This document shows, one piece after another, positions 5,546 to 62,307 of a stretch of 64,000 nt of DNA. Position 1 is the first letter of the stretch. The number at the start of each line of letters is the position of its first letter. The position numbers and the translations under genes were made by a program. Source of the DNA: Mobula hypostoma (taxonomy: Eukaryota); NCBI RefSeq assembly GCF_963921235.1, contig NC_086102.1, positions 43,958,001-44,022,000 of the forward strand, in the 5' to 3' direction. The notes under the pieces are model-generated. The model was not told the DNA's origin. It was given only the letters and a program-made list of their open reading frames with translations, and made no database searches.

Positions 5546-5643
5546 TCTTCTTCTTCTTCTTCCTCCTCTTCTTCCTCCTCTTCTTCCTCCTCTTCTTGTT
5601 TAGGTGCATGTAGGCGTATTACAGCCCGCCGCAGGATGTATAA

Positions 5644-37209: not shown

Positions 37210-37476
37210 TTATGCAAATTGTTGTAGAGAAAAACTTGTGGTTGTATGGCAATTAGCATTCTGGGCTCTCTTTGACGTGGGACAAACGCTGACTGTGAAG
37301 TTACATACGGGTTCTTCATAGATAAGATTATTTTTATCTTTGACCTTTAAAGCAGCATATTCTGTTTCATGGGCCTGTGCTGGACTTCTCAATTCTTGCC
37401 TTTGCTTCCCCGTGGGAGGATTGCTAAAATAAACAGATGCATATTGCAGAGTTTCATCACTTAAAGAAACGTTAAC
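37210..37476 (-). CDS. Terminal cytoplasmic exon with tyrosine motifs (ITIM LQYASV, ITSM-like TEYAAL, YEEP)
   Basis: A strong acceptor tttttgtgttgcag|GTT (phase 0) is followed by 88 open codons to TAA, in non-repetitive sequence. Confidence 0.8.
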   Translation of the reverse strand, partial: VNVSLSDETLQYASVYFSNPPTGKQRQELRSPAQAHETEYAALKVKDKNNLIYEEPVCNFTVSVCPTSKRAQNANCHTTTSFSLQQFA

Positions 37477-40400
37477 CTGCAACACAAAAATAAAAAAGTA
37501 TCATTATATTTTATTCCTCATTACATTTTTAGATGACCCTATTTTGGCATAAATGCTGTACACAGCAAAACCATGTGGAAATGTTGGTATTAAACTTAAG
37601 CAGCAAATACCAATGGGCTGTGGATTTGTGTGTTCGTGACCATGAGTCTGACCACTAGCACTGTTGGCCAATTTTTATTTTCAGTAAAATCATGACTAAT
37701 GAGACAGCAACTTCCTCCTTTATAATCAGTTTCATTTCCAAGTCCGTGTTGGAGATTCTTGAACTCCTGGCCAATGTCACATTACCATAGTTGTAGACAG
37801 ATCACAAAAGTTCATTGGAAAAGAAGGGAATCTTGCCTGGAAGACAGTAGGCTATCTTTAAGCAATAGCCAGCTATTGCATTCAGTCCTTTCAAGTTCAA
37901 GTTTATTGTCATTCAATCATATACATGTATACCACCAAACAAAACAACGTTCCCCCAGATCAAGGAGCATAACACGTACATATACAGTAACTCACACACA
38001 ACACATAAAAAGATATTACCACACATATTAAAATATATTCCAGAAGTTTACCATACCCATGGTCTGCTCTTTATCAAATTACAGTATTGCTTTGCACTGT
38101 TGTAACTATATGTTATAATTATGTGGTTTTGTCAGTTTTAGTCTCGGTCTATCCTGTGTTTCTGTGATATCATGCTGGAGGAATATTGTATCATTTCTTA
38201 ATGCATGCATTTCTAAATGACAATAAACGAGGACTGAGTGTCCTCATAATCTAAAAAAGTTTGACATTTAGCATAAGGTGCAATTATGACACTAGTTAAA
38301 AGGTAAACAATATAACACTACTGGCACTTCATAAGTGATGAGACCTGGGTGGTGGCAGGAAGTTCAGTTATCTCACGGCCTGGAAGAACAAGCTGTTTCC
38401 TGTCCAAACACTACTTGTTCTAAAGCTGGAACACCCGCTGCCTGATGCTAGGGGGGGGTCAAAGAGATTGTGGGTCAAACAGGAGGGATGTTTGACAATG
38501 CTAAGGGCCTTGCAAATGCAGCGTTCCAGATAAATATATCAGATGGGTGGAAGAGAGACCTTGATGCAAGACCAGCAAGCTTGTTGGAATCAGAGAGTTT
38601 AGTGCCGGCAATTCACATTTCACTGTTCATCCAACTGTTAAACCAGTCAGATCCCTAGATAAACTGCCTTAGAGTTCACCCCATTCACTTTCTGCTGTTA
38701 CGTACTCAGTAATGAACTCCAAGTAAATTATCAGCCAGAATTTATTAATCCATGCAGATTCCAGGTTTTCTTCCTTGACCTACATCAGGCAGCAGCTGAG
38801 ACGATGCAATTTACTTGAGAGCTTGGATTCTACAAGTAGAAGCAGGCTTGTTCTTCTGAATGTTTCCTAAAAACTTGAAAAATATTGTAACATAAAGCAT
38901 GAACCTACTAAACAGCCTTTGCACCATAAACATTTCTGCTTGTTTTGGGTGTCTGTCTAACAAGCAAAAAATTAATGTTCCTCATCAGTAGACCTCAATC
39001 AGTGAGGATGGCAGGGCACCTCCCTAATGATCTTTAACGCTGCCGCACCTCAATGCTGCATGCGTAGCCCCCTGCTCTAGTCTTTCTACACAGCTGACTG
39101 TGTGCCTAAGCACAGCTCCAACGCCATTGTCAAATTCGCCAGTGAGACTACTGTTTCTGGATGAATCACAGATGTTGATAATACTGCCATTACTGTTATT
39201 GGACAAGTCACAGCTTACCAGAGTGAAATATGTCACCTGGTTGACTGGTGCTGCAAAAACAACCTTGCACTCAATATCAGTAAAACTAAAGAGCTGATTG
39301 TTGACGTCAAGAAGGGGAAGGGGGGAGCACATACACCTATCTACATTGGGAGGATCAATGGTGAAGAGACTCAGCAGCTTTAAACCCCTGGGTGTTAACA
39401 TATCAGATAATCTGTCCTCGCGACAGCACAAAGATCCAATCGTAAGGAAAGCAACTGAGTAACAACATCTTCCTTCAGGCTGTGGGACTAATGAATACCC
39501 TGTCACCACCAAGTATGCATCACTAGGATAGTGAGCTGTTTACTGTGCTGTGCATTATGTGAACTTTAAGTTATATTTTAATAACCTACTTGTGGTTTTA
39601 TTTTATTTGCTGTGTGTATGTTTTGTGGGTGCAATATGGTCTAGAGGAACATTGTTTCATTTGGTTGTAGATGTGTAGAGCCAGGTGACAATAAACTTGA
39701 ACTTTCTTAGGTGGTTGAGGAGCTTCAACTTGCCAGTGAACATGAACAAACTTTTACAGATGTAGTGCTGAACATATCCTGAATGGTTGCACCACAGCAA
39801 ACTGAACGTGCAGGAACATAAGCAGCTAAAGAGAGTAGTGGACTCTACCCAATATATTATAACCGTATCCATCCCTACCATTGGTAGGATCTACAGGAGG
39901 CACTGGCTGAAGAAGACCTCCACCATCAAAGATCCCCACCATCCAAGCTATGCCACCTTTGTGCAGCCGCCATCAGACAGGAGGTACAGAAGCCTGAACT
40001 CCCACACCATCAGGTTCAACAACAATGACTTTCCTTAAATGCTGCCTGGCCTGCTGAGTTCCCCCAGCATTTTGTGTGTGTTGCTTGGATTTACAGCATC
40101 TGTAGATTTTCTCTTGTTTGTGATTTGATTACTACACTGTGAAGTCTCTTCCAGAAATGCTTACCCTGAAGAAGTTTAAACCTCCCCTTCGATGGGAGTT
40201 CAGTGAAACCCTCCCTCACTGCTCCCCCTCTGTGATCCCTGCTGCTCTCCAACTCTGTGGCCACGTGCTTATCCAGACCCGCGACTACAACCATGTATCC
40301 TTTCTGGGAACATGTCTTCGCTGCTAGCTTGCACCACATGGCTTCGAGATTCATTTAGGTGCTGCCTGGCCTGCTGAGTTCCTCCAGCATTTTGTGTGTG

Positions 40401-42807
40401 TTGCTCTGATTTTCAGCATCTGCAGATTTTCTCCCTCAACCATTCAGTTCCTGAACCAGTCAGCAAAACCTTAACTCTACATCTTCAAAGATTCAAGATT
40501 CAAAGTACATTTATTATCAAAGAATGTATAAATGATACACCTTGAGATTGGTTTAATTACAGGCAGGCACAAAGCAAGAAACACAAAGAACTCAATTAAA
40601 ATAAAGAAAGACCATAACCACTGCACAGAGAAAGAGGAAAAAACACACATCATGCAGACAATAGAAGCAAGCGACAGCAACGCTATGACTAATTTGATGG
40701 TTTTACATTAAAATGGACTTGTTTTGTTCTAATTGTTTTCATTCTTGTAACAATTGTGAATAATTTATGTTTTTCTTGTGAATATTGCTTATGTAATTCT
40801 GTGTGCCTGTGATGCTGCTGCAAGTTAAGTTTTTCACTGCACCTGTACATAACATGTATTTGTACGTACATGTGACAATAAAATTGGGGTTGACTTTATA
40901 TCTGTCCAGCTGTAAAAACGTGTGATGAACAGCACTTTAGTTTCTCACCCACTGAACCACAGCCTCACACGTGGAGTGAAAACTGCATTCTCGGTCTGAT
41001 GTGCACGAGTAAATTTATATGCAAAAAATTGCGGCCAAGATGTTTCACTTGACTACTATACAGCCCCTGGACTGGTCTAACACCTGAAGAAACCATCTGG
41101 GCACCGTAATGTGAAAACCACTGAGAGGGCGAATTTTTACTCTTAACTTTTACAAGTCTTAAGGAGTAGAAGGGTGAAGGATGTTTAAAATTGCAGACTG
41201 TACTTCCTTAAAAGTTAAGTTTCAAGTACATTAACCCGTTAAATGTTAATGCAAACTACATGTCGCATAATGCAAACATTCTCATTTACTGGATGCATTT
41301 TTCAGGTCATTTTACATACTTAGTTAGAAACTGAAATACAATGCAAAGTGAAAGTGACATCACTTGTGCAATTGATTATTAACAATGAAATTGAATTTAA
41401 GGGCAAATATAAAGAAACAGCACTCTGTACCAAAGAAAAGCCTCCTTGATTGATTTGTATATTTATTTATTTATTTATTGAGTTACAGGCTTTCCTGGCC
41501 TTTTGAGCAGTAACGCCCAGCAACTCCCGATTTAACCATAGCCTAATCATGGGACAATTGACAATGACCAATTAACCTACCGACCAGTTTGCCTTTGGAC
41601 TGTGGGAGGAAACCACAGCACCTGGAGGAAACCCACATGGTCACTCATTATAGCTCTGTGACATGGATTTCACTTTGTTGGCAATTTCATTCTAGCTAAA
41701 AGAACCAAACAGGCATGAAACTAAATAGAGTACATTAAAAAATACTCATAATCAGCAAACCACAAAGTGATAAAAACACCTTTTATAATGTACAGAAAGC
41801 ATTATAAAGAATAAGATATACTATAGACATGAGACTATGGTAGGAACCATAATATCAACATACTTTTCACAAAAAGTATTTTTGATTATTTTAAAAGCGA
41901 TAGATTTTTTTTACTTTGGAAAGGAGAATGTTTATGTTCTACAAAAAATATACAGCAAAAGAAAAGTTTAGTAATATTTCTGGCATACTATGCTTTTAAA
42001 ACTGTTATGCCTTGATTTGATTTTCTGAAGGGTATTTACAGTGAGAAGAAAATACAAAATGTAAATTCATCTCACTTTCCAAATTTGTAAAAATTTTACC
42101 TTTTGGAATTTTAGCTATGTAGTCCGAGGGGACATAGGACATCATTGTCAGTAACTTATGCATTTCCAGTTTTTACTACAGATATAGGCTCCACAGGTTG
42201 TTGGCAACTTCAAAATGTATCAATAGTAGCTACCACCCGCTTAGCTATCAACACGTCAGGTAATATACCTCAAAGGGCGATAACTCAACAAAATTAATGT
42301 GTAACCAAAAGCCAAAAAATTGGAATTAAATAGTTGGCCAAGGAAAACAAGCAACCCTGTTCCCACCTCCAATACTTCGCTAGGTTATGGAAACACATTG
42401 GTCTAGAGAGTTTCATTGCAGCATTCACAAAAATAAACAAAATAAATATTTCCAACTCTGACCTACCTCTATCAATAGGCCTTACCCTCAAATGCTTCAA
42501 CTTTAAGAGGAATGATTTATCTCTCACCAATCTGCAGCCACATTTGGAAATTAGCATGCTGCTCACTATGGAGCAGGCATTTTCCTTACCCACGTAGTTA
42601 TTCATTGATGTCAGTGTGGAAAGAATATAACGATGGGAATGTTGTAATGGTGCAGAATGCTATATCTGCGGGGTAGTAAGACATAAGGTGTCGCTAATGT
42701 TCTTCACATTAGGCAGAGGTTAATTCTGATATATGTAATTTGTTAAAATTGAATCAAAAATTTACTGAGAAAGAAACTAGAGCTAGCAGAAAAGGCAACT
42801 ACATTAC

Positions 42808-43199: not shown

Positions 43200-46100
43200 A
43201 CACAGATAAACTGCCAAGAGAGGGAAGGGAAAACATTAGACAGTGGGGAGTACCCCTGTGGCCATCTCCCTCAACAATAAGTACTGTTGGGGGGGGGGCA
43301 ACGACATAGCTGGGTGAAGCAACACCAGTCGTGCCTCTGGCACTGATTTTGGCCTGTGGCTCAGAAGGCTAGGGAACTAAAGGGGATGGTAGCAGTAATA
43401 GGGGACTCTATACAAGGGGACAGATACGTGATTCTGTAGCCGCAAAAAAGAAACACGGATGGTAGTTTGCCTCCCAGGTACCAGGGTCTGTGATCTTTCT
43501 AAACGCATCCACAATATCCTGAAAAGGGAGGGTGAGCAGCCAGAAGCCGTGGTACATATTGGTAGAAAAAGGTAGGAGGTCCTGAAAACAGAATACAAGG
43601 CGTTACGAAGGAAGTAGAGAAGTAGGACCTGAAAGGTAGGTATCTTGGGATTGCTGCCTGTGCCACACGACTGTGAGGATAGGAAATAAATGAGGTGGCA
43701 GATAAATGTGTGGCTGAAGAATTGGAGCAGAGGGCAAGGATTCAGATTTCTGGATCATCGGGACCTCTTCTGGGGTAGGGGTGGCCTGTACAAAAGGAAC
43801 GGGTTGCACTTGAATCTGAGGAGGACCAATATACTTGCAGCCAGATATACTAAAGCTGTTGGGAGTGGTTTAAACTAATATGGCAGGGCGAAGGGAACCA
43901 GTATGATAGAACTGAGGATGAGCCTGCAAGTACATGATGGGTGTAATACGAATGTAAGGAACGACAAACCAATGATGTGTACAACTCCAGACAGTGCAAA
44001 GAGTTAAATTGTACCACAGAGGCAAAATTCAAAAGGGAGAAGAATGCAGGACTGAAGGTGCTGTATTTAAATGTGCGTAGCCTTCAGAATAAGATAGACA
44101 AACTCGTGGTGCAATTAGAGATTGGGCATTATGACATTGTAGGCATCACTGAGTCATGGTTGAAAGATGGTGATAGTTGGGAGCTTAATATCAAAGGATA
44201 TACTTTGTATCAAAAGGACAGGCAGATAGGCTTAAGTGGTGGTTTGACCCTATTGGCAAGAGATGCAATTACTTCTTCAGAAAGAGGTGACATTGGGTCG
44301 GAGAATGTCAAACCTTTGTGGAGTTAAGAAACTGCAAGGGTGAAAAAAACATTATGGAAATCATATAGAGGCCTCCATATAGTAGCCAAGATGTGGGGTT
44401 GAGTTTGCAAAGGGAGCTGAAAAAGGAATGTAATAAGGGTTATGACACAATTGCAAAGGGGGACTTCAGTTTGCAAAAGGATTGGGAAAATCAGGTTGGT
44501 GTCAGATCGCAAGAGAGGGGATTTGTTGAATGCCTATGAGAAGGCTTTCTAGAGCAGCTTGTGCTTGAGCCTACATGGGGAAAGGCTATTTTAGATTGGG
44601 TGTTGTGCAATAACACAGAATCTTATTAGGGAGCTTAAGGTTAGAAAAACACCTTTAGGAGGCAGGGATTATAATATGATTGAATTCATACTGCAGTTTG
44701 AGAGGGAAAAGCATATGTCAGATGTATCAGTATCACAATGGAATAAAGGGAATTACAGAGGCATGAGTGAGGAGCTTGCCCAGTTGTGCTGGAGAGGGAT
44801 ACTGGTGGGGATGACGGCAGAGCAGAGGTGGCTGAAGTTTCTGGGAATAGTTGTCAAGGCACAGGATAGATACATTCCACAAAAGAAGTTCTCAAATGTC
44901 AGGGGTAGGCATCTGTGGCTGACAAGAGAAGTTAAGGCATGTATAAAAGTCAAGGAAAGGGCATATAATGCAGTAAAAGTGAATGGGAAGTTGGATGATT
45001 GGGACGTTTTTAAAATCCAACAAACGGCAACTAAAAAAGCTTTAAGAAGGGAAAAGGTGAAATATGAGGGCAAACTAGCCAATAGTATGGCGGGATACTA
45101 AAAGTTTTTTCAATTATACAAAAAGTAAAAGGAGGGTGAGAGTTGATATTCGAACATAGAAACATAGAAATCTACAGCACATTACAGGTCCTTCAGCCCA
45201 CAATGTTTTGCCAACCATGTAACCTACTCTCAAGTTCCTACGGTTGTCACAGCCCGGGGGTGGTAGTGGGGATAAGCTCCCACTATCTATAAAATGCTCT
45301 AAATGGCATGCGACTCTAACAGCCTCTGACAACCTAGTCCAACTCTTGGTCTTCACCTGTGCCTTAGCTACTAGGCCTAGCAGAACTGTTTCTACTGACA
45401 AGAGAAGGGGCAAAGGCAGACCCACTTTGGAGTCGATTAGTAAGGATGAAGTTTCGGGGAACTTGGAGATTGATGATAAAATAAGTCAAAGTCAGCATGA
45501 TTTCTGTAAAAGGAAATCTTGCCTGGAAAATCTGATGGAGTCCTTTGAGGAAGTAACAAGCAGGGTGGACAAAGGAGAGGCAGTGGATGTCATTTACTTG
45601 GATTTCCAGAAGGCATTTGATAAGGTGCCTCTCACTGAGACTGCTTATAGATAAAATCCCATGGCATTACAGGACAGATACTGCCATAGTTAGAGGAATG
45701 GCTGACAGGCAGGAAACACAAGGTTAATTTACAGGTTCAGTCTGTGGTAAAGAAGGCAAATGCAATGTTGGCATTTATTTCAAGGGGAATAGAATATAAA
45801 AGTCAGGAGATAATGTTGAGCCTTTATAAGACACTAGTCAGGCTGCACCTGGAGTATGGTCAACAGTTTTGGGCCCCTTATCTCAGAAAGGAAGTGTTGT
45901 CTTTGAAAAGAGTGCAGAGGAGGTTCACGAGGATGATAGCCAGAACAAAGGGGTTAGTATATGAGGAGTGTTTGGCATTTTTAGGTCTGTATTCACTGGA
46001 ATTTAGAAGAATGCAGGGTGGATCTCATTGAAACCTACTGAGTGTTGAAAGGACTAGATAAGGTGGATGTGGAGAGGATGTTTCCTATGGTGGAGTATCC

Positions 46101-46400
46101 AGAACTAGAGGGCATAGCCTCAAAATTGAGGGGCAACCCTTTAAAACAAAGGAAATGAGAAGTTTTTTAGCCAGAAAGTGGTGAATCTGTGGAATGCTGT
46201 GCCACAGGCAGCTGTGGAGGCCAAGACCATGGGTATATTTAAAGTGAAAATTGATAGTTTCCTGATTGGTCAGGCATCAAATGTTATAGCGAGAAGGCAG
46301 GTGCATGGTGTTGAGTGGGATCCAGGATCAGCTATGATGGAATGGTGGAGCAGACTCGATGGGCTGAATGGCCTAATTCTGCTCCTATGTCTTATGGTCT
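43200..46400 (+). mobile_element. Long degenerate CR1 LINE (esterase-type ORF1, APE, RT fragments)
   Basis: SGNH-like ORF1 remnant (GDSI.., GLHLNLRRT), APE (VLYLNVRSLQNK, VGITESWL) and RT (YLDFQKAFDKVP). Confidence 0.85.
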
Positions 46401-47792
46401 TAGCTCATCCATGCCATCCAGTGGGCACTCGTCTGTATTATGCCCTTTCCCAACACTTGGTCTATTGCCCTCCCTGCCTAAGCGATTCAGGTGCTCATCT
46501 ATTGCTGTTCCTTTTCGCACTTTGTGGCACATCAGACAGCATTTTTTACTGTTTTCTTAGCATTTGACTGTTTTTATGGGGTCAATTTGCTAGCTCAACA
46601 CACAGATGTAAAGCATGATAGCAGCTGGCCAGATTCAAACCCGAGACCAATCGCCTCGAAGTCTGATGCTGATGTCACTATACCACTGGCTAGTTTAGGT
46701 GCTTATCTATACACTTCGTAAATACTTTCAGTTAACCAGCTGCTACTAAACTCTCAGAAGTGTGTTCCAAGAGAAGAAGGTCCCCCTCAGATCCCCCTGA
46801 AATCTCTCCCACTTAACCTATACCTATGTCATCTAATTTTAACTGCCTCTGATTTGGAAGACAGCTCCTACTGTCTATCCTATCTATACTAATAATTTCT
46901 TATACCTTACCATGTCCCCTCTTAATGTCCTCCACTCTTCAGAGAACAGATAAGACTTCAACAGTCTCCTCAGGAGTGAACCATTTCATCCCAGGCAAAT
47001 CTCCTCTCTATCCCAGCTCTATCATATCCTTCCTGTATATTGGGGTTCAGGCTGCACACAGTACTTCAGCTGAGGTATGACCTATATTTTATAAATTAGT
47101 AGCATAACCTCTCTACCTCTGCATTTCCTTCCCCAGCTAATTAAAGCCACAATCGAACGTGCCTTTCTAACCAATTATCTTCCTGTGCTATCACCTTCAA
47201 GGACCTTTGAATGTCCTCCAAAATCCATCTGGCTGTCAGAACTCCCCGGAACTCTACCATGCATGGTCATTTGGCACTCAAACTGCACCACCTCATGTTT
47301 GTCTGGATAAAATTCCATATACCATGTTTCATCAGCACAGTCTCTCACTGCAGCCTAAAACAATCTTCCACACTATCAACTTCATGCCAGCCGTGAACTT
47401 ACTCATCAAACGTCCCACACCCATACACATTTATAATGTATTGTTTATCTTACAAATATATATGAAGGTTGAAATACGTATCTTACAGCTATATTATAAA
47501 AGCAGCAAGGTTCCCAGTACCAGCCTTTGTGGGACACCGCTTGTCAAAGTCATTCAATTGTAGAAACCTTCAATCTGGCATTAACTTAATATGCAGGCAG
47601 TTAAAATATATTCCACTCAACAGACTCCATGTATTCCCCACTTTGCCTTCTTGGTGCCTCCCATCTAATGGCACTGGTAAATTAATTTAAATAAGCTGGC
47701 AATACTTTACTGAACTTTCAGTACATCAGAGATCATGTGCATACGGTATGGGGTGGGGGTGCGAGTTGTTTGATATCAAAGTGTATACTTAC

Positions 47793-47863
47793 TCTGTTTA
47801 CTGAATCTTTCTTCCATTTTCTCTTTGTTTGATTATCAACATTTTTGTCATGGGCTGATGAAT
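47793..47863 (-). CDS. Juxtamembrane cytoplasmic exon (DSSAHDKNVDNQTKRKWKKDSVNR, phase 1-0)
   Basis: tttttatag|...|gtaagt; the frame is open and converts the phase 1 end of the TM exon to the phase 0 start of the terminal exon. Confidence 0.7.
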
Positions 47864-49127
47864 CTATAAAAATACCATGAATATCATAAGCATCTCAGGT
47901 TAGTGGGACATATATTTTTACATAGAAGCAACAGTCTTTTTTGACTGTTTTGCATTTTTAAATCTTTTTATTAATTATTATTGAAAATCAACAAAAAAAG
48001 TAACAGTCTTGATACTGTAAGTAACAATTGGATACTAATCAGTATCAACATTTCAATTTCTAATTCTTCAAATAATAATTGGCAAGTCAGCTTTTTTAAA
48101 CTACATTCCTAAACTGTGGGACTGAATACCTAAAACTGTAAGGGATGCAGACTCAGTTGACAATTTTAAACACCAGTTCAAAACCTATTTACTTAACCTT
48201 GTTTTTAACTAACATCTATTTGTCTTTTATTTTCATGTTTGAACTTTATCTAATTGTAAAGGACTTTGAACTACATCGTTTGTATGAAGAGTATTCTATA
48301 AATAAATTATTATTATTAATAATTATATTTGAAAGCTATGTTGGCTTAATTGGATGCAGAACTATTTATATTTAGCTGCACTCATTTTCTGATATAAGCT
48401 TATTTCGAAAGGAGCAAAAAACAAGCAGCTCGTAGGATGGGGGAAGAGGCAGAACAAGCCTCTTGTTGGAGTTGGAGTAGGCGAGAGGAGGGAAGCTGGA
48501 AGCCAGGAGCAGATGGGCAGTGATTTGGCCACCACTGCCGGCCCACCAACTGGAGAGTGTCGTGGTTAAGGGTCGAAACACTCGGTGAAGGTTGGGAACC
48601 ACCTGATGACATCTGATCCTGGCTGAAGGCTACAGTTACCTTATAAGGTAACTGGAGAATGCACCCTAACAGGTGTATGTAACAACTGCTTTTTTTTAGA
48701 TGAACTATTGTAATTTTGTAGGCTACATTATTATCTTTGTTGTGCATTTAATATATCAGTAATATTTGAGTAATATTGTAAATATATTGTTTGATTAAGC
48801 ATTTTTTGTTCATATAAGTAATTCATTATATGTAAAAGTACATGAATGCCATACATCATTACGCCACCACATCATAAATACGCACCTCACTGAAAATAAA
48901 TACGAAGAGTACACATTTGTCCTGGTCTCCCCGCGTTTTTCTTTTGATTAGTTTTATGTTTTGGAGTTACGAAACATAACAGTACTCTCTCCAGAAAATG
49001 TTATTTGAGTAGAATTTAAAACAGATTTTCACTTTTCTAATTACTTTTGCTTGAGAACTAAATGGGATGTTCACATTGATATACTCAGTTCCGTTACCAA
49101 GTAAAAATAAACAATGTATCTGATTAC

Positions 49128-49229
49128 CTTTTCCATTCTTGTGTTTACAGCATCGATTATTAATGATCCAGAAGCATAATGGTACAATGAGGATAAGAGT
49201 CAGCAGAGCAAAATAATACTTGGGGAATC
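49128..49229 (-). CDS. Transmembrane exon (GFPKYYFALLTLILIVPLCFWIINNRCCKHKNGK, phase 1-1)
   Basis: ttttgaag|...|gtaatc; a 19-aa uncharged hydrophobic stretch followed by CC and basic residues. Confidence 0.8.
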
Positions 49230-49669
49230 CTTCAAAATTACAATTGAAACATAAATTAAAACAATGTCACAATGAAAAGCAAATAGATCTCTAACTGATG
49301 CATGTTACTTTACATAAAATATTTCAAATAGACTCATACATATAACATAAATCATACATTAAGACAGAACTACATTTAAATCTACCATTTCTCAGAGGTT
49401 GTCCTCATGAAATATGCCAATAGATTCCCTTCTTAGGATCTTCACACAGAATATCAACAATACTTCTGCTTATGTACAATCTAATTCTATTTCTACAAAA
49501 ATCCTTAAATGCACAAAATAGCCTTTCAGTGGACAAAACCCACACTGTCATGGAAGATGATATCCAGAGTAATGATCTAATTATTCATGCCAAGGAACTG
49601 TCATACTTCATTGATTACCAATACAGTGAATTGCCACGATATAGTATTTTGTAAATTACCACAGCATAA

Positions 49670-51425
49670 TCCGCTATGAAAGTGGAGCTGACCAAAGTTG
49701 ATTGGAAGGGAACACTAACTGGGATGACAGCAGAACAGCAAAGGCTGGAGTCTCTGTGGGCAATTCGGAAGGTGCAGGTTAGAAACATCGCAAAGATGGA
49801 GGGGTATTCAAAAGGGAAGACAAGGCAACCGTGGGTGACTGGCGAAGTTAAAGGCAGCATGAAAGCCAAAGAGAGGTCATATCATATAGCAAAAATTAGT
49901 GGGAAGTTAGAGGAAGTTAGGAACTTTTTAAAAACTAACAGAAGACAAAGTTAAAAACACAAGGAGTGAAAGATGAAATATGGAGATAAGGTAGACAAAA
50001 ATATCAAAGACACCAAAAGTTTTTTTTCAGTTATAAAGAGTAAAAGAGAGGTGAGAGTGGATATTGGAATGCTGGAAATGACACTGGAGATGTAGTAACG
50101 GGAGCAAGCTTAATACGTATTTTGCGTCAGTCTTCATTATATCAGAAATTCGAGCATGTCAGGGGGCAGAAGTGAGTGCAGTTACTATTACTAAGGAGAA
50201 GGTGCTTGGGAAGCTGAAAGGTCTAGAACTAGGTAAGTCACCTGGACCAGACAAACTATAACACAAAATAATCTGCAGATGCTGGGGTCAAAGCAACACT
50301 TTCAGTACGCTGGATGAACTCAGCAGGTTGGGCAACATCAGTCAGAAATGATGAGTCTACTTTTCGGGCCGGAACCCTTTGTCAGGATGAAGAATGAAAG
50401 ATGGGGAAGGATTTGAAGAATGCTTGTAGCTTCAGTTGAAAGATCCCTCTGCAACCCATGATAGCCTTCGTCACTGTCCACAACACCCCAAATCTTGGTG
50501 TCATTCACAAATTTGCTGATCCAGTTAAGTATATTATCATCCAGATCATTGATATAGGTGACAGAGAACAATGGGCTCAGCACCGATCCCTGTGGCACAC
50601 CACTAAGCACAGGCCTCCAGTCAGAGAGGTAACCATCTACTACCACTCCCTGGCCTCTTAAAGCTAATGTCTAATCCAATTTACTACCTTATCTTGAATG
50701 CTGAGTGACTGAACCTTCTTTTCCAACCTCCTACACGGGGACCTAGTCAAATGCCTTGCTGAAGTCCATGTCGACAACACCCACTGCCTTGCCTTCATCC
50801 ACTTTCCTGGTAACTTCCTCAAAAAAGCTCTGTAAGACTGGTTAGACATAACCTATCACACACAAAGCCTTGCTGACTATCCTTAATCAGTCCATGTCTA
50901 TCCAAATACTCATATATCTGGCCACTTAGAATACCTTCCAATAACCTTACCACAACTAATCTCAGACTCAGCAGCCCGTAATTTCCTGGTTTATGTATGG
51001 GGGTGTTTGATGGCTTTGGGCCTGTACTCACTGGAGTTTAGAAGGATGAGTGAGGATCTTATTGAAACCTATCAAATACTGAAAAGCCTAGACAGAGTGG
51101 ATGCGGAGAGGATGTTTCCTATAGTGGGTGAATCTTGGACCAAAGTTCACAGCCTCCAAATAGAGGGACGTCCATTTAGAAAAGTGATGAGGAGGAATTT
51201 CTTGAGACAGAGGGTAGTGAATCTGTGGAATTCATTGCCACAGGAGGCTGTGGAGGCCAAGACATTGAGTATATTTAAAGCAGAGGTAGGTAGGTTCTTG
51301 ATTAGTTAGTGTGTCAAAGGTTACAGGGAGAAGGCAAGAGAATGGAGTTGAGAGGAATAATCAATCAGCCATGATGAAATGGTGGAGCAAACTGGAAGAG
51401 CCAAGTTGCCTAATTCTGCTCGTAT
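49670..51425. mobile_element. CR1 fragments in mixed orientation (+ 49670-50270, - 50430-50990, + 50995-51425) with a PLE fragment inserted
   Basis: CR1 ORF2 motifs on both strands (SGVPQGSVL; FLRQRVVNLWNSLP). Confidence 0.7.
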
Positions 51426-51427
51426 GC

Positions 51428-52866
51428 CTTATAAATGATAAATTACCACAGTACAGTGTCTTATAAATTACCACAGTATGGTCTTATAAATTACCACAGC
51501 ACAGTGTATTATAAATTATAAATTACCACAGTACGGTGTATTATAAATTATAAATCACCACAGTACAGTGTCTTATAAATTACCACAGTACGGTGTATTA
51601 TAAATTATAAATCACTACAGTACGGTGTCTTATAATTTATAAATGACCACAGTATGGTATATTATAAATTACCACAGTGCGGTGTATTATAAATTACCAC
51701 ATTATGGTGTATTATAAATTACCACAGTACAGTGTCTTATAAATTACCACAATACAGTGTATTATAAATTATAATTTACCACAGTAGGGTGTCTTGTAAA
51801 TTATCACAGTACAGTGTATTATAAATTATAAATTACCACAGTACGGTGTCTTATAAATTAACACAGTAGTGTATTATAAATTATAAGTTACCACAGTACG
51901 GTGTATTGTAAATTACAAATTACCACAGTACGATGTCTTATAAATTACCACAATACGGTGTCTTATAAATTATAAATTACCACAGTACGGTGTCTTAGAA
52001 ATTACCATAGCACAGTATTATATATGACTACAGTACAGTGTATTATAAATTATAAATTACCACAGTACGGTGTCTTAGAAATTACCATAGCACAGTATTA
52101 TATATGACTACAGTACAGTGTATTATAAATTATAAATTACCACAATACGGTGTCTTATAAATTACCACAGTACGGTGTATTATAAATAATAAATTACCAC
52201 AGCACAGTGTATTATAAATAATAAATTATCACAGTACAGTGTATTATAAATTACCACAGTACGGTGTATTATAAATAATAAATTATCACAGTACAGTGTA
52301 TTATAAATTATAAATTACCACAGTACGGTGTATTATAAATTACCACAGCACAGTATTATAAATTACCACAGTACAATGTATTATAAATAATAAATTATCA
52401 CAGTACAGTGTATTATAAATTACCACAGTACAGTGTATTATAAATTATAAATTACCACAGTAGTGTATTATAAATTATAAATTACCACAGTACGGTGTAT
52501 TATAAATTACCACATTTTTTGTAGGCATCCGTTAGTCTCATGAGACCATGGATTTGCGCCTTGGAAGGTTTCCAGGGCACAGGCCTGGTGGCACGTTTGT
52601 ATGGAAGACCAGCAGCTGCCCATGCTGCAAGTCTCCCCTCTCCATGCCACCGATGTTGTCCAAAGGAAGGGCATTAGGACCCATACAGCTTGGCACCAGT
52701 GTCACCGCAGAGCGATGTGTGGTTAAGTGCCTTGCTCAAGGACACATACGCTGCCTCAGCCAAGACTCAAACTAGCAACCTTCAAATCACTAGACAAACG
52801 CCTTAACCACTTGGCCAGGCATCAACAAATTACCACAGTACGGTGTATTATAAATTACCACAGTAT
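51428..52866. repeat. AT-rich minisatellite with ~25/32-bp units (ATAAATT)1-2ACCACAGTACGGTGTATT
   Basis: Directly visible tandem array of roughly 40 units. Confidence 0.95.
52515..52826 (-). mobile_element. tRNA-derived SINE inserted in the minisatellite
   Basis: The minus-strand 5' end has an A box (TGGCCAAGTGG) and a B-box-like AGTTTGAGTC, and the 3' end is A6. It is flanked by AAATTACCACA (52504-52514 and 52827-52837). Confidence 0.8.
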
Positions 52867-53131
52867 GCATGTTATAAATCGTCAAGCTGTTAATGAAAAA
52901 TAAACAATACACAAACATTTGGAAACGAGGATAAGGCTAATGCATGCCTGCTTCCTAATTCACAGACTGGATGTGGCAACTGACCAACTTTTGCGTAATC
53001 AGTCTGTTGATTTTGTATTCAATGATATTAGTGGAAGCTGGTGCCATGATCAGATAATAACGTACAGAACTGTTGGTACACACTTGAAAGCATGAAATAT
53101 GTATCCTTTAATGAGCTCTCTATCCCCATAC

Positions 53132-53173
53132 CTGCTGCATTTCTTGAAGTAACCAGCATAACTTCAACTTCCT
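53132..53173 (-). CDS. Short stalk (or first coding) exon, EEVEVMLVTSRNAA, phase 1-1
   Basis: ctgttgtttgtag|...|gtatgg; open and frame-compatible with both C1b and the TM exon. Confidence 0.6.
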
Positions 53174-55050
53174 CTACAAACAACAGTGGTTAATTGCAGA
53201 ATGTTTATGTGTTCTTTCTCTTTCTTCTCCTTTCCTCCGTGTATTAATCTATATGCAGGTTTAAGGCAGAGGTTTGCCAACCAAGGGCAGAATCTGCTTC
53301 TGCTATTTTTGATTTGGATCAAGGCACAAATGACAATTATTTGTTTTTCAGGTTGACGGGTAATATTTCAATCTGACAGTGTGTAGAGGTTAAAATGAAG
53401 TGTTTTCTTGACTCACATTGGAGATTGCCACTATAATCAATCAAACCATTTATAAATTGCTACTGGAACCTATCATAACCAAAGGAGTTAAAAATTTAAT
53501 CTATCTGATGTTACTTTTGTTCATACTTCTCATTTACAAGAATGGGATGGACAACTGAAAATGAGCTGAAGGTTTCTAAATCACATTTGTAGGGGCACTT
53601 ACTTAATCTTTCCTTTCAAAGTCATACTAGAGAATAAATAATATATTAAAGTACCACTTTTACTTATTCTCATATTCTTCAAATTAACTATCTGGAGTAA
53701 ATCTAACTCTTGTTTTGTATGAAACGTTCATATCTTAAAGAGTGGTTGTAGCTTTTGGAGACAGTGCAGCTGTTTCCTGGAAGTACTGCATCAGCTATCT
53801 TTACTTAGGGACACTGATGTCTTCATTTATGGATTGTCTCACCATGAAAGATATGGAAGGATTTGTAAAGATGATGCATTTCATTCAATGGTTGCAGTTG
53901 CTTTAAAATAAAGGTGTTTTATAAAATGTAATTCGTTGAAGTAAATCTTGTGCCTTTAACACACAGTTGTATCTTTGATCATTTCTAAATCATCAGCTAT
54001 TGTTCATTCATGTCCTGATGTTTATGGCAAAAGTGGAATGGCCAGACCAGTTTTTGGCTTCTTATGTGCAGAGGCTGATAATCAGAGTTATTATTAATTT
54101 CTTAGTTTTCCTGGGCAGAGTGAGCTTTTCTGAAATTGTCCAACTGTGTTTAATTTTCTAGCTTTGGAGAGATGCTAATTGAATGATAGACACCAAATCT
54201 GAAAATTAATATTAGATTTACTGTTTGTATGACTGTTGTCAAGGGAAAATCCAATAATCCAGAACTGCAACCTGAAGTCTTGAGTTACAATGTCACTTCT
54301 ATTCTGATTCGGATCCACAAACCTGCTTTGCAGCCACTAAACAGAGTTACTAAGGCCATGTCTTACAGTCTTACCTAAGGTATAGGTCCTTTCACCATCA
54401 TTGACTATCTTCACATTATTATTTCAATATAGCACAGGACTTTAGGGCAAAGTTTCCTATAGTCTCCGTAGATTAGCCCCAACCATCTTATATTAATACT
54501 TATGTACAAATTCAAATCTAGGACAGAGACATCATTCATGCCTGCTCCGTTATTTAGTAAGATCGTGGCTTTTTTGATTATAACCTCAACTCCACATTTT
54601 CATCTCCTTAATAACATCTAAACCCTTTACTTATCAATCCATGTAGCTCAACCTTAAAAAAATTCAAAGCTTCTGTCTTCACTACCCTTTGAGGGAGAGA
54701 GGTTCAAAGACTCAAGACAATCTGAAAGAAAAAAAAATCACCATAACAGTCTAAAATGGGCAATGACAATTTTTTTAAGATGATCATTAGTTCTAGATTC
54801 TGCCACAAAGAGGGAACATTCTCTCCATAATCACCCTATAAAGGATCTTCCACACGTTAATCAAATCCCCTCTAATTCCTCTAACCTCCAGAAGATGCAA
54901 ACCTAGCCTATCCAACTTTTCCTCAAAAGGAAACATAACAGTAAACATTCTCTGGACACTTCCAAAGCACTCTTTCTTAAGAAAGGCTCCTGATCCTCTA
55001 CACAGAACCCTGGATGTGATCTCATAAAACTACTTTATAGCTGAGGCATA

Positions 55051-55960
55051 CAGTGGCATGCAAAAGTTTGGGCACCCCAGTCAAAATTTCTGTTACTGTG
55101 AATAGCTAAGCAAGTAAAAGATGACCAGATTTCCAAAAGGCATAAAGTTAAAGATGACACATTTCTTTAATATTTTAAGCAAGATTACTTTATTATTTCC
55201 ATCTGTTACAGTTTCAAAATAACAAAAAAGGAAAAGGGCCCGAAGCAAATGTTTGGGCACCTGCATGGTCAGTACATAGTAACACCCCCTTTGGCAAGTA
55301 TCACAGCTTGTAAATGCTTTCTGTAGCCAGCTAAGAGTCTTTCAATTCTTGTCTGGGGATTTTCGCCCATTCTTCCTTGCAAAGGGCTTCTAGCTCTGTG
55401 AGATTCTTGGGCCGTCTTGCATGCACTGTTCTTTTGAGGTCTATCCACAGATTTTCGATGGATGTTTAGGTCGGGTGACTGTAAGGGCAAAACCTTCAGC
55501 TTGAGCCTCTTGAGGTAGTCCATTGTGGATTTTGAGGTGTGTTTAGGATCATTATCCTGTTGTAGAAGCCATCCTCTTTTCAGCTTCAGCTTTTTTTTTC
55601 ACAGACGGTGTGATGTTTACTTCCAGAATTTGCTGGTATTTAATTGAATTCATTCTTCCCTCTACCAGTGAAATGTTCCCCATGCCACTGGCTGCAACAC
55701 AAGTCCAAAGCATGATCGATCTGCCCCCATGTTTAACAGTTGGAGAGGGGTTCCTTTCATGAAATTCTGCACCCTTTTTTCTCCAAACAGACCATTGCGG
55801 CCAAAAAGTTGTATTTTAACTTCATCAGTCCACAGGACTTGTTTCCAAAATGCACCAGGCTTGTTCAGATGTTCCTTTGCAAACTTCTGATGCTGAATTT
55901 TGTGGTGAGAGTGCAGGAAAGGTTTTCTTCTGATGACTCTTCCATGAAGGTCACTGTAAT
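55051..55960 (-). mobile_element. Tc1/mariner transposon remnant (C-terminal transposase plus one TIR)
   Basis: TA|CAGTGGCATGCAAAAGTTTGGGCACCC terminus, and transposase motifs WKQVLWTDEVKI and [19 protein letters not shown]. Confidence 0.85.
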
Positions 55961-58900
55961 CTCCCTCCACTTGTATTCTTTTCTCCTCACAATGACCAAT
56001 AACATAAATAATGCTCAGCTTTCATAATTACTTGCCATCTCTGGGTTACTGGCTGCAGCAAAACACCAGGATCTCTGAATCACAGAGCTCTGTGGTCCCT
56101 TACCTTTTATATGTATCTATACAGTATCTTACATAAAATATATACATTGGATTTCAGTTAATTGGGCCAGAAGTTATTTGGGACAACATTTAAAAAACAA
56201 AAACTAATGGAGAAAACAACCAGGATTCCCTTGGCTTATTTAGGGCAGAAGACTGCTGCTGAACAGTTTCTAACCAGCGTCAGAGGCATGTGCCTGCGTG
56301 GCTGCGTGGCACACTACACTGTGCTTAGAGTGAACAGTTTTTAAACAGTGACAGTTGAGTGTGTTTATGTTCAAGAAGCAATGACTTTTGTCACTGATTT
56401 CTGATGAGAAAAAAGCAGTAAGACAATTCAGAACTGTTTTGTCACTGTGGTTTCAAGCATTCTGGCTTGGAGATTGACGAATCGGCCGGGAGTGAAACTT
56501 GAAATTATTTCACTACTTCAACAAGTTAGGAACTATGAAGAATTTGAGGGTATCAACAATCATCTTGAATGTTAACTTTGCTCCCCACCAGAGTCACATC
56601 TCCCCTGTGGCTCAAAGTAGCTGTTTGCATGCGACAGCAGCCATGCCCTGATACCCTGCTTTGACAGGCAGGCTAAAGCAGGCGAGGGTAGCCAGGGAAG
56701 GGTTTCATACCACAGTGAGATAGGGACATGCCTGCTCTAGCATACAAAGTCATGTCAGGCGGACTGGGTGAATGAAATCTAAAGTGAGATCCAACAGCCA
56801 GGAAGGCAGTTCTGCAACAGTCCATGAACAGCAAAGGATATGATGAGGCAGGGAAGAAGCCATAGTCATCCACTGCAACCAAGGAGACCCCTGTTGTGCT
56901 GTCTGCCCGTATCACTGGATCCGGACTTATGAGGAGACAATGGGACTGTCCTTGGGCAGTGGATTTTCCACTTTAGAAACTTCCCCGCACATCGCTGGAT
57001 AAGACAGCAACCATCAGTAGTTTTGGTAGCATTCCAATTTGTTCTGTATTTCATTTAAATGCATACTTTGTTACTCAGTTAAATGGTAGTTTGTTCTTTT
57101 TATATAATATTTTAACTATTTCTATTAAAGGTTGGCTAATTGGGCCAGGCACTAAAATATACTGGATGGGCCCAATTAACTGTATTAACTATGTATAGAG
57201 GGGGAGAGGGGGAGAGATTATATTTTATATATATATATATTACACAAGAGGGAAAAAACAGAAAATACTGGAAAGACTTGTTAGATCAGACAGCATCTGT
57301 GGAAAGAGAAGCACGGTTAATGTTTCAAGTTAAGGACCTCGTAAGAACACAGTGCAAAACAGGCAGATAGAAATGCCAATGGAGAGAGCAACAGAAATAA
57401 TTTCAGGTGGACATTCCTGGTGGGGAAGTGGTAATGAATTCAGCAATGAATTCATCATCTTTGCTGATGCTGCAAATCTGAATAACAACAGAAAGTGCTG
57501 GAATCACTCATCAGTTCAAGCAGCAGCTGTAGAAAGAACCAGAATGTCAATATTTCAGGATAAAGATCCTACCACATCTTTGTTATTTTTAATTTAGTAC
57601 TTCCTAATTTTTCCCACCAAAGTGTACAATATCCTATTTTTCAATATTATGCTCCAGATGGTGGAACTTCCCAGCTCACTTAAATTTCATTTTGTAATCA
57701 TTTTGTAGCCTGCTTCTATCCTACTTTCCTTCCTGTCCCTGTGTCATCAACAAATTTAGCAATCATTCAGTCAACATCTTCATACAAATCATATATAGCA
57801 TAATAAGAACTCAGAATCAATCTATTTAGCATACCATTTGTTTCATCTTGCCAACTATTTCTGTGTGCTCTCTGCTTTCTGTTCGACTCTCTGGTCTTTT
57901 ATCCCTCCCAACATTAACTTCTACCGTGAGCTTTTAATTTTTGCAAAGACATTTGATGTGCCACCTTATCCAATACCTCTGGAAATCTATATATAGAACA
58001 TCAATAGGGGCCCCTTTAAATAACTCCAATGCATTGGTCAAACATTTCCTCTTGAGAAAACCACGCTGACTTTTCTTTTGATCTTTCTGCACACTATAAT
58101 ATTTTTGACATGCTATAATATTTTAATTACAGCTTCTACTATTTTACCTTTTAACAGATATTAAACTAATTGGCCTGTAGTTTTCTTGGGTTCTATTCCC
58201 CTCCCTTCTTCAATAAAGGGGTTAAAATGCCATTTTCCAGACAAATCGGATTTTCGGGTATTCTGGAAATTGAAAACTGGTGCATCAGCTCTCCCAGGAG
58301 CAGTTTCCTTTAAGACCCTAAGGTGAGGTCCACGAGGATTCAGGGACTTGTCCACGTACAGCTCCGATAATTTGCCCAGTAGTACTACCACGGCGATTGC
58401 AATTCCCCCAATTTCCTCCCTCTCTTCCAATTCCCGATTTACAACTTCTTTTCCATTAATTCCCCAAACTCGCTTTTTGTGGGAGCAGCTCCTGCTGCAG
58501 TCGTTCATTTATGGCTGGCTTTGTCCCACTCTGATTCTTTTTCTTTTATTGGTTGTTCAACCTGCTTGGGAAGTCAGCCTTGTTGGCGGTTCAACTGGAA
58601 CCCTTTAAACATTAATTCTGTTTCCTCTCCGTTTAATTTTTCGCACAGCGCCATGCAATCGTGATTTAGAGCAGGGAAATCTGGAATGATGATGAATTCA
58701 ATTTCAGTGAGAGGCGATTGAAAGGGACACCCCGTCGCAGCCTAAAACTGCAATTTAGCAAGTCATCGTGACCTGGGATTTGATCTTGCAGCGCCCGCCG
58801 AGTGGGCAAGGCACTTGTTCACTGAACACAGAAACTTCGATTTCCTGCGCACTATAGCGATTGGAATTGGCTACAATTTGGCGGGGAGAAAGTGAATTTT

Positions 58901-59213: not shown

Positions 59214-59800
59214 CTGGGGAAGGGCACTAACCCAGACAGGACGATGGACGAAGTCCGGTAAAATTCTACTTTTTTTTCGCCATTTATATTTTACAGTATT
59301 GAGTTTTGTTTGATTGGATTTATATGAATTGGTTCATTAGATAATATCTGTAGCCTATTGCCATAATTCGTGAATGTGTTTTGCAGTAACGCTGTTCCGA
59401 AAAAGAATACTTCGTTGGTGCAAGCGCACGAAGAAACAAAATGTTGGAGATATTAGCAGATCACGCGGGTTGTGTAGAAAGTAAACGACAGTGTATGCTT
59501 CAGGTCCAGGGACCAAGGTCATGGTAGCCTCAGCTCTTGTCTCTATCCAATTCCTTTCATAAACCTTCACAAGTAGCAAATTATTTGAAACATTCACGAT
59601 AACACACAGCGCAAGTTTTCTATCAATTCAATAAATTGGAATAAATTATTTCGCAATAAAAGACTGTAGATATTGTAGGCGTTACCCGAACGAATTGCGT
59701 TCAACATATGGTTTTATAAATTTACAAATTTTATCTCCAAATTTCACCCGTAATTGGGAGAAGCAGGTTGTGAGATTTTCTCCCCGTGTAAACCACCTAC

Positions 59801-60094
59801 CTCGGTTGAAAGTGAAACTTGTGCTCACACTCCCTGTAACGTGTCGAACCAGGCAGGTGGCGACCTGAACTGACTCCCGCCGAGCGTCGTTCACCCGCAG
59901 CCGGGAGCTCAGGCTGTAGGTAAGGTCCTCGTTTACCCTCAGCGGATCCGCCTCTGTTTCATACGAGACATCTCCCGTTACAGTCCAAGAAATATTCAGA
60001 TCTTTCGGGAAAAATCCCGCAGCTACACAAATCAGGGTCTGAACCCCAGTGGCTTCGTTGTTGGGATCCAGAGAGAGGGAGACGTCAGGCTTCG
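59801..60094 (-). CDS. Ig C1-set exon 2 (C1b), phase 1-1
   Basis: tgtgcag|CG...CGA G|gtaggt; motifs LICVAAGFFPKDLNISW, DLTYSLSSRL and TCLVRH. Confidence 0.93.
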
Positions 60095-60673
60095 CTGCAC
60101 AGAACGGGAGAATTAACACATTGTGAATTTTACTGTAACCCAGACTGATACAGACAGCAAGAGTGGACACAACTGAAGACGGTGCATGATATAAAGGTAA
60201 CACTGAACTGAATTGATTATTTTGTGTCTCAAAATTCGCACCGGCAGGAAGAGAAACAAAATACAGCCCGAGAACGGAATGAATTTGGAATGTTACAGCG
60301 AGTGTAAATAAAAAAAGATGCTGGAGATTTAGAATGTTAAAAAAACAGAACCGCCGGAAGTATCCAGCTGGTCTGGTCGAAGAGACGCAGAGTTCTGACG
60401 AAAGGTCTTCAATACCAAATTTTAACTCTGTTTCTCTCTCCACATTTGCGACCTGACCTGCTGAGTGTTTCCAGCACGTTCTAGTTTTATTTTTCAGTTC
60501 TTTTCGACCAGGCACATGTTGGTCACAAGATGCAAGTTACGCTGGTAGGATGTTCCAACAAGGATGTTTCACGGTTCCGATTCCCCATTAAAAATCCCTA
60601 ATTTTACTTCCAAATTTCACCCGTAGTTGAGAGAAGCAGGTTGTGAGATTTACTCCGTGTGTAAACCACCTAC

Positions 60674-60967
60674 CTCGGTTGAAAGTGAAATTTGTCCTCA
60701 CACTCCCTGTAACGTGTCGAACCAGGCAGGTGGCGACGGGAACTGACTCCCGCCGAGCGTCGTTCACCCGCAGCCGGGAGCTCAGGTTGTAGGTAAGGTC
60801 CTCGTTTACCCTCAGCGGATCCGCCTTTGTTTCATACGAGACATCTCCCGTTACAGTCCAAGAAATATTCAGATCTTTCGGGAAAAATCCCGCCGCCACA
60901 CAAATCAGGGTCTGAACCCCAGCGGCTTCGTTCTTGGGATTCAGAGAGAGGGAGACATCAGGCTTCG
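60674..60967 (-). CDS. Ig C1-set exon 1 (C1a), phase 1-1
   Basis: Same splice signals and motifs as C1b, with 12 nt differences in 294. Confidence 0.93.
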
Positions 60968-61832
60968 CTGCACATAACGGGAAAATTAACACATTGTGAA
61001 TTTTACTGTAACCCAGATGGATACAGACAGCAAGAGTGGACACAGCTGAAGACGGTGCATGATACAAAGGTAACACTCTGAACCGAGTTGATTATTTTGT
61101 GCCTTAAAATTTCACACCGGCAAGAAGAGAAACAAAATACAGCCCGGGAACGGAATGAATTTGAAATGTTACTGCGCGTGAAAATAAAAAAAAAGATGCC
61201 GGAGATCAAAAATAATTTTTTTGAAAAACAGAACCCGTTGGAAATATCCAGCAGGTCAGGTCGGAGAGTCGAACATGTCCAACGAAAGTTCTTCAATACC
61301 AACCGTTAACTCTGCTTCTCTCTCCGCATCTGTGACCTGACCTGCTGAGTGTTTCCAGCACTTTCTAGTTTTATTGTTCAGCTCCTTTCGACCAGACATA
61401 CATTGGTCAGAAGATGCAAATTACACTGGCAGTGTGTCCCAACAAGGACGTTTCGCGGTTCCGATTCCCCATTACCAATTCCTCCGGTGTTTAACCGATT
61501 TCTGATCGGCTATTTTACCCGCCTCTCTACCACTGAATTTTTGGGATGTGGCGCTGATGTATTCAGCGACAAGTCTTCTCTTCCCCATGCGGGAGATTGT
61601 TTCGGTGTTGCTTAATCTGGTTACTTTGGGTCAGAAGCAAAACACAAACCAAACGCGGCGAAGACAGGATTCCTTCAGCAAGTCAGAGGGCGTTTGGAGA
61701 AAGGGACCTAAAGACTCGTTTTCCAGCTCGGCCATTGGTCTGAGACTTTGGCCCCAGTTCCCTCGCTTCACACTTTGCCCGGTGTGCTGAGTATTTCCAG
61801 TGTTTACTGGTTTCGTTTCATACGTACTGTAC

Positions 61833-62165
61833 CTCGGATGGTTACTTCTGTTCCGTTTCCAAAATATGTTTCCCAGGGTCTCGAATCCATTATCAGCGCT
61901 GAGCAATGGTAGGTGTCAGAGTCATCCACAGTCACTTCCCGAATGACCAGCCCGCCTTCCTTCACAGATACAGAGAACCGAGTGCCATTTTTCAGGAAAT
62001 TATTGGACCCGTTTACAGAATGGTCTCTAATCCGAGTCCAATAATATCTCGCCGAATCCACCCGCTCGTCCCCGGATAACAGGGAACAGCCGATCCGAGC
62101 TGTCTGTCCTCGGAGAAGGGTCAGAGCTGAAGGTGTCTGATTCACTTTCAGAGCAACAATTGGCC
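61833..62165 (-). CDS. Single-exon germline VJ-type Ig V domain, phase 1-1
   Basis: ttttctgttctag|GG...CGA G|gtacag; IGC, YYW and DSDTYHC motifs, and a J-like YFGNGTEVTI in the same exon. Confidence 0.93.
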
Positions 62166-62258
62166 CTAGAACAGAAAATCACCACAATTAGCAAAAAGAT
62201 TCAAAATTATGAGAAGGCAACGAGAATAAATGTCAAACGGAGAGAACGCGTGAATTAC

Positions 62259-62307
62259 CGGGGAGAAACAGCCAGAGCGTGTACAGTAAGATTCCGAGTA
62301 GTGACAT
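62259..62307 (-). CDS. Signal-peptide exon MSLLGILLYTLWLFLP(G)
   Basis: ATG at 62307, 16 hydrophobic codons, G|gtaatt donor, and a 93-nt intron in frame with the V exon. Confidence 0.9.

Follow-up and report, generated by a model that had tools for sequence, protein, structure and literature searches.

The 64,000-nucleotide window of the Mobula hypostoma genome analysed here (contig NC_086102.1, positions 43,958,001 to 44,022,000) carries on its minus strand a gene for a predicted type I receptor of the immunoglobulin superfamily (IgSF). Seven coding exons spread over 25.1 kb encode a 469-aa product that comprises a split leader, a V domain of germline VJ type, a pair of near-identical C1 domains, an uncharged transmembrane (TM) segment and a tail with candidate immunoreceptor tyrosine-based inhibitory motifs (ITIMs). 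These exons reproduce RefSeq XP_062908587.1 of the same species with 100% residue identity over 469 aa, and the coding span of that protein on the chromosome, 25,098 nt, is exactly 62307-37210. The RefSeq entry shares a 90% cluster with a protein of Mobula birostris, and its automatic name means ‘SIRPα-like’. We consider it very probable that the locus is an intact, expressed gene of M. hypostoma and the inhibitory member of a small, elasmobranch-wide family of paired receptors.

The eight minus-strand exons proposed in the first-pass annotation could be rebuilt without difficulty. All eight have AG acceptor and GT donor borders and compatible phases, the Ig-type exons being phase 1, and together they form an open frame of 1452 nt (483 aa) that is closed by its only stop. 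Exon 1 (62259..62307), with its GT donor in phase 1, supplies the start codon together with the larger part of the split leader (MSLLGILLYTLWLFLP-); it matches the start of the RefSeq protein and is kept in Mobula, Hypanus and Hemitrygon. Exon 2 (61833..62165, with AG/GT borders) contributes the end of the leader and a single-exon V(J) domain (Pfam V-set, 61833-62163, E 2.8e-9) that is 82% identical to its Hypanus orthologue. Inside this exon, at 61834-61863, lies the J-like sequence FGNGTEVTIR, a germline FGxGT G strand. Two C1-set domains come next: domain a in exon 3 (60674..60967; Pfam C1-set 60674-60965, E 1.5e-12), which is in the RefSeq protein, and domain b in exon 4 (59801..60094; Pfam C1-set 59801-60092, E 5e-13), a duplicate of exon 3. 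The TM exon (49128..49229), which is kept in all orthologues, encodes GFPK, the uncharged TM segment YYFALLTLILIVPLCFWII (49162-49218) and the basic, Cys-rich NNRCCKHKNGK; it is followed by a first cytoplasmic exon, cyt1 (47793..47863; DSSAHDKNVDNQTKRKWKKDSVNR). The last coding exon (37210..37476) ends at the stop and carries LQYASV (37432-37449), TEYAAL (37348-37365) and YEEP (37309-37320). The three tail motifs and the uncharged TM segment of the earlier description are all present. These motifs are kept across elasmobranch orthologues, and a Pfam search with the last exon matched no family. No further copy of any receptor exon is present in the 64-kb window.

In the first-pass annotation, a 42-nt ‘stalk’ exon (53132..53173) connected C1b with the TM and ITIM exons, and the join across the 6.6-kb C1b-stalk intron rested on phase compatibility only. 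Orthologues in 11 other elasmobranch species confirm that the exons of the Ig domains are linked to those of the TM segment and the ITIM tail, but by a route that skips the stalk. Every orthologue joins the end of its last C1 domain (...F.F[NS]R) directly to the G[FV]xKYYF... of the TM exon, and the orthologues map onto all proposed exons except 53173-53132. Logan contigs from four runs, each listed as ‘RNA?’, were mapped to 47700-53300, a stretch of 5.6 kb that covers cyt1, the TM exon and the stalk. The minus-strand GT..AG splice joint 47863->49128, which unites cyt1 with the TM exon, was found in runs X1 (a 256-nt contig) and X3 (a 333-nt contig). Both contigs cover the TM exon, stop matching at its acceptor, within an ambiguity of 2 nt, and continue into non-adjacent sequence rather than the neighbouring intron. 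The X3 contig extends 69 nt past the TM acceptor and 87 nt past the cyt1 donor with sequence found nowhere in the 5.6-kb stretch. Because it runs beyond both outer exon borders, TM and cyt1 are internal exons of a spliced transcript, and a transcription start at the TM exon itself, which the earlier reading had named as a way in which it could fail, is not what the contigs show. When a collection of 5.8 billion proteins was searched with 141 aa of the Hypanus orthologue, spanning C1b, TM and tail, no match came up. Run X3 is flagged ‘probably DNA’ despite its spliced 47863/49128 contig, so that it either contains RNA-derived sequence or bears a wrong flag.

It is therefore very improbable that the TM and tail exons belong to another transcription unit or that the gene is a decaying pseudogene. 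Two introns, of 10.6 kb and 10.3 kb, are full of transposons, and expression is low, both of which would suit such an explanation. Against it, the open reading frame is intact and identical to RefSeq, the same domain order recurs in the 11 other species, and RNA contigs show TM and cyt1 spliced on both sides.

The stalk is a minor in-frame cassette exon at best, outside the main transcript. It is found neither in the RefSeq model nor in any orthologue model from the 11 other species, and its phase compatibility carries no weight because the 10.6-kb C1b-TM intron holds 333 open AG...GT cassettes, 30-150 nt long, in which phase and frame are preserved by chance. In X3, depth over the stalk exon is zero, although 69 nt of the contig lie beyond the TM acceptor; this molecule skips the stalk. 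Among the joints listed for the mapped contigs none leads to 53132. We accordingly find it doubtful that the 483-aa form, with its 14-residue stalk (EEVEVMLVTSRNAA), is a genuine and regularly made isoform, even though the splice sites are acceptable, the exon is in frame and run X1 shows a trace of depth that would fit occasional inclusion. There, the bin that holds the stalk (53123-53300) has a mean depth of 0.7, equivalent to about 38 nt at the gene contig depth of 3.3, while the other unique intron bins are at zero, and the X1 contig reaches 102 nt beyond the TM acceptor, which leaves room for the stalk and C1b. The Narcine locus has no match to the stalk region, but Narcine is too distant for this to count. 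Of the originally proposed leader-VJ-C1-C1-stalk-TM-tail protein of 483 aa, every part except the stalk is retained, and the main product has 469 aa.

In that product the tail tyrosines are Tyr393 (LQYASV), Tyr421 (TEYAAL) and Tyr434 (IYEEP), with TEYAAL 28 residues downstream of LQYASV. The first motif is kept in all full-length orthologues as [LQ]xYA[SPF][VI], and the second is almost invariant across the family as [TSK]EYAxL (TVYAAL in Pristis). The tail had been described as an ITIM followed by an immunoreceptor tyrosine-based switch motif (ITSM). Conservation upholds the ITIM and a TxYxxL motif but not the ITSM in its canonical form, TxYxx[V/I], since TEYAAL has L at +3. Type I orientation, an uncharged TM segment and a conserved [SIVL]xYxx[IVL] motif together place the predicted receptor among the ITIM-bearing inhibitory members of the IgSF, and the core of the earlier reading, an elasmobranch inhibitory receptor built on a germline VJ domain and C1-set domains, appears to hold. 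AlphaFold2 modelling of the 469-aa protein from a 14-row alignment gave a mean pLDDT of 42.6, too poor for use.

Tail composition differs among lineages. Sharks (P0004, P0051, P0052, P0054 and P0056) have two extra distal motifs, xYS[TA]V and a C-terminal T[TI]Y[AV]SL. In rays, including the M. hypostoma gene (window 37210-37320), these two distal tyrosine motifs are lost (NFTV, TSFSL), which amounts to half of the ITIM-type sites; shark tails hold four or five tyrosines, and ray tails two plus YEEP. RefSeq also lists X2 isoforms for Hypanus (P0001) and Pristis (P0002), in which a short alternative end takes the place of the last ITIM exon, leaving a predicted TM receptor that lacks inhibitory motifs; no exon matching this end occurs in the 64-kb window.

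The receptor belongs to a family that is conserved within elasmobranchs. Queried with the V exon by HMMER, a set of 1.84 billion representative proteins yielded only four close clusters, all of them elasmobranch RefSeq predictions; when the Hypanus orthologue served as the query, Mobula birostris, Heptranchias, Stegostoma, Hemitrygon, Mustelus, Hemiscyllium and Heterodontus joined them. The order V-C1(-C1)-TM-tail is found in M. birostris, Hypanus, Pristis, Narcine, Scyliorhinus, Mustelus, Stegostoma, Hemiscyllium, Heterodontus and Heptranchias, with one or two family genes per genome by the searches run. RefSeq names 8 orthologues automatically as SIRPβ1-like or PTPNS1-like and others as Ig kappa-like, IgH-like or TCRβ-like. 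No description of the family was found among papers on SIRP, ITIM, C1-set or paired receptors of sharks, elasmobranchs or cartilaginous fish. The gene is already machine-annotated in RefSeq and belongs to the known class of ITIM-bearing paired IgSF receptors; its family is undescribed in the literature searched.

Comparison across this family bears directly on the two C1 domains. The duplicated block (~59727-60384 vs 60600-61268) is 91% identical at the nucleotide level over ~669 nt. Its two C1 exons agree at 282 of 294 nt, the 12 differences causing 8 amino-acid differences, and the domains are 92% identical. Two C1 domains occur only in Mobula and Hypanus (Myliobatiformes); Pristis, Narcine and all sharks have one. 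The duplication is not very recent, because the two-C1 state is common to M. birostris and Hypanus. In a tree of C1 domains, copies a and b, together with the C1 of the activating gene described below, cluster by lineage and not by position, which suggests either duplication followed by gene conversion, with the activating paralogue involved, or repeated duplication. Judged by this distribution, the ancestral form of the family is V-C1, and the second C1 is a duplicate specific to the myliobatiform rays (stingrays and mantas). The V-C1-C1 likeness to SIRPα is thus convergent, and the first-pass use of this architecture as a sign of SIRPα ancestry falls with the V-C1 receptors of sharks, sawfish and electric ray.

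M. hypostoma, on the same chromosome, and also Hemitrygon and Pristis each have a further protein of 260-270 aa with the same leader, V and C1, followed by DDYLIPFILRAVII..., a TM segment and a short tail. All three of these activating-type twins (P0055, P0053 and P0049) have Arg in the TM segment. The M. hypostoma twin (P0055, 270 aa) has ~85% identity to the inhibitory V-C1 and a TM segment that reads ...IPFILRAVII..., and the Pristis pair reaches ~99% identity over V-C1. The activating TM exon has no match in the 64-kb window. The P0055 locus, which lies outside the window, spans 23.6 kb and abuts the gene of a SNF2-family helicase that has a GRF zinc ribbon and a length of at least 1182 aa, a possible synteny anchor.

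These pairs indicate a family of inhibitory and activating paired receptors, whose signalling we infer from their motifs and from the established biology of ITIMs and charged TM segments. Binding of a ligand by the V domain would bring the tail near Src-family kinases. The two resulting phosphotyrosines, spaced as in other tandem-SH2 docking sites, could then recruit phosphatases of the SHP-1/SHP-2 type and damp activation. The sister with Arg in its TM segment would pair with an adaptor that carries an immunoreceptor tyrosine-based activation motif, and so deliver the opposite signal.

Several points weigh against the interpretation of the locus as an expressed inhibitory receptor gene. Mapping of RNA covered 47700-53300, and in this genome the C1b-TM bridge rests on RefSeq and the orthologues. 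Expression is low in the RNA runs examined. Phosphorylation, SHP binding and recognition of a ligand stand as predictions. TEYAAL, by its sequence, is ITIM/ITSM-like rather than a canonical ITSM, and the signalling strength of rays may differ from that of sharks through the loss of the two distal tyrosine motifs.

The rest of the window appears to be dominated by mobile elements. Long open frames at 4155-9977 (-), 13485-15694 (+), 26613-29627 (+), 35474-36463 (-), 43947-46564 (+) and 55096-56021 (-) look by eye like remnants of reverse transcriptase/endonuclease, hAT-like, gag-pol-integrase and Tc1/mariner-type transposase genes. Intron repeats at 48400-48820, 50130-51440 and 52375-52935 reach very high summed contig depths in all four runs, up to ~54,000, and show numerous rearranged joints; they represent abundant transposon families, either transcribed or multi-copy, and explain the ‘share of words’ of the runs. 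Over the 37 kb that lie downstream of the receptor gene no further host gene could be recognised, and the 10-kb flanks of the gene showed no neighbour. An assembly gap of 144 N occupies 2325-2468.

The automatic names raise the question of whether the receptor is a true orthologue of tetrapod SIRPα, which would mean that cartilaginous fish already had a SIRP/CD47 system. Several observations point that way. In addition to the SIRPβ1-like and PTPNS1-like names of 8 orthologues, the top PDB matches to V-C1 as a whole include SIRPα/γ, and the likeness takes in the ...GTELxV(R/Q)AKP hinge; of the solved chains that align V and C1 in a single stretch, SIRPα 2wng is the best. The best non-elasmobranch match is a bird SIRPβ1-like protein (E 1.9e-17). 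Paired ITIM-type tyrosines of the sharks end at the C-terminus (TTYASLKK), as in SIRPα (SEYASVQITRK), and the inhibitory/activating pairing resembles that of SIRPα/β. Once the domains are considered separately, the likeness fades. Searches of the PDB with the V exon or a V-only profile returned VNAR (IgNAR V), TCR Vα, Ig VL and CD4/CD8, with IgNAR V and TCR Vα best, and SIRP d1 was absent both at E<=1e-3 and among the best 60. With the C1 exon, UrIg2 came first (E 8e-18 for the single sequence and 1.6e-32 for the profile), then Ig constant domains, with SIRP behind them; for the C1-only profile SIRP fell outside the best 60.

Against bird SIRPα tails, shuffling of Smith-Waterman alignments gave z of 0.9-3.0, and hhalign a probability of 5% (P 0.008), a likeness that is not significant at the sequence level. 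Pfam searches of the family tails produced sub-threshold matches only (DUF4578, at 26.3 bits in Hemiscyllium; HGAL; SIT), and in an Atlas feature search the tail stayed below a score of 0.9. Further arguments against orthology are the ancestral form, with one C1 rather than two, and the Ig kappa-like, IgH-like and TCRβ-like names of other orthologues. The PDB rankings are biased, since a chain with more than one C1 tends to score higher and hardly any elasmobranch V domains other than VNARs have been solved; the rankings fail to support membership of SIRP and are no proof of another ancestry. With IgNAR/TCR Vα as the best matches to V, and UrIg2 and Ig constant domains as those to C1, orthology with SIRP is unproven, and we think it rather unlikely.

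Single-exon VJ genes followed by C1 domains have been sought as relics of the ancestor of antigen receptors (PMC12227049). UrIg and UrIg2 are non-rearranging elasmobranch VJ-C1 genes with split leaders and with duplicated C exons that gene conversion has homogenised, and automatic annotation misnames them; the UrIg2 paper mentions neither SIRP nor ITIMs (PMC12227049). The receptor described here has the same exon plan, with a split leader, a single VJ exon without a V-J interruption, and C1-type exons. It may therefore represent a separate non-rearranging VJ-C1 lineage, kin of UrIg/UrIg2, of immunoglobulin light chains or of the NAR/TCR V clan, which gained an ITIM tail and came to resemble SIRP by convergence. 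We regard this origin as a serious possibility, though still somewhat short of an even chance. It accords with the shared exon plan (PMC12227049), with UrIg2 as the best solved match to C1, with IgNAR V and TCR Vα as the best solved matches to V, and with a C-domain duplication whose homogenisation mirrors that of UrIg2. An Atlas feature search agrees, as V lands on ‘antigen receptor’ V clusters. Weighing against it, the bias of the PDB rankings towards multi-C1 chains and VNARs applies here too, the matches to V are modest (~37 bits), and the best match to V is other than UrIg/UrIg2. Moreover, UrIg is a secreted protein, and no ITIM has been reported for UrIg2, which carries many C domains.

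More tentatively still, the family could be a third non-rearranging VJ-C1 lineage beside UrIg and UrIg2, distinct from SIRP orthologues, in which an inhibitory/activating pair has gene-converted ectodomains. On this view its V would be nearest to the IgNAR/TCRα V clan and its C1 to UrIg2/IgL. If so, it would provide a living example of a signalling VJ-C1 receptor beside the ancestors of rearranging receptors. Irrespective of ancestry, the conserved sequences show that elasmobranchs carry a VJ-C1 family with ITIM tails and activating twins, which would amount to SIRP-like checkpoint logic in the oldest jawed vertebrates. As the locus is already in RefSeq, the finding adds no new gene but rather curation: the main isoform, a doubtful cassette exon, the conservation of the motifs and the convergent V-C1-C1 architecture.

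Among known systems, PD-1 offers a parallel for the tail, in which a membrane-proximal ITIM is followed by TEYAxx ~25-30 residues on. The ITSM of PD-1 is TEYATI, with V/I at +3, and its ectodomain is a lone V, whereas the ray receptor has TEYAAL. The NITRs of bony fish likewise place a germline VJ-type V on a TM receptor and come in ITIM and charged-TM versions. Their second domain is I-type rather than C1, and they form very large gene clusters, in contrast to the one or two genes of the ray family. UrIg differs as a secreted homodimer with three C domains, and UrIg2 as a molecule with 9-11 C domains (PMC12227049). For neither of them is an ITIM tail or an activating twin on record, and their V domains have no specific similarity to that of the ray receptor. 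Held in common with UrIg/UrIg2 are the split leader, the single-exon VJ, the duplicated and homogenised C1 exons and the automatic misnaming (PMC12227049).

In contrast to SIRPα (SHPS-1/PTPNS1), in which d2 and d3 are old and distinct, the second C1 of the ray receptor is a lineage-specific duplicate. The ray tail keeps two tyrosine motifs, not four, the shark orthologues are V-C1 only, and V is nearer to IgNAR/TCR V than to SIRP d1 in PDB searches. The charge in the TM segment of the twin is Arg, whereas in SIRPβ1 it is Lys. SIRPα nevertheless shares much of its plan with the ray receptor: a type I receptor with an N-terminal V that has a J-like G strand, then C1-set domains, an uncharged TM segment and an ITIM-type tail. 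SIRPα/SIRPβ1 further resemble the ray family in that the inhibitory receptor has a near-identical activating twin with a basic TM residue and a short tail. By analogy, the elasmobranch receptor pair would work, both functionally and architecturally, like SIRPα/SIRPβ.

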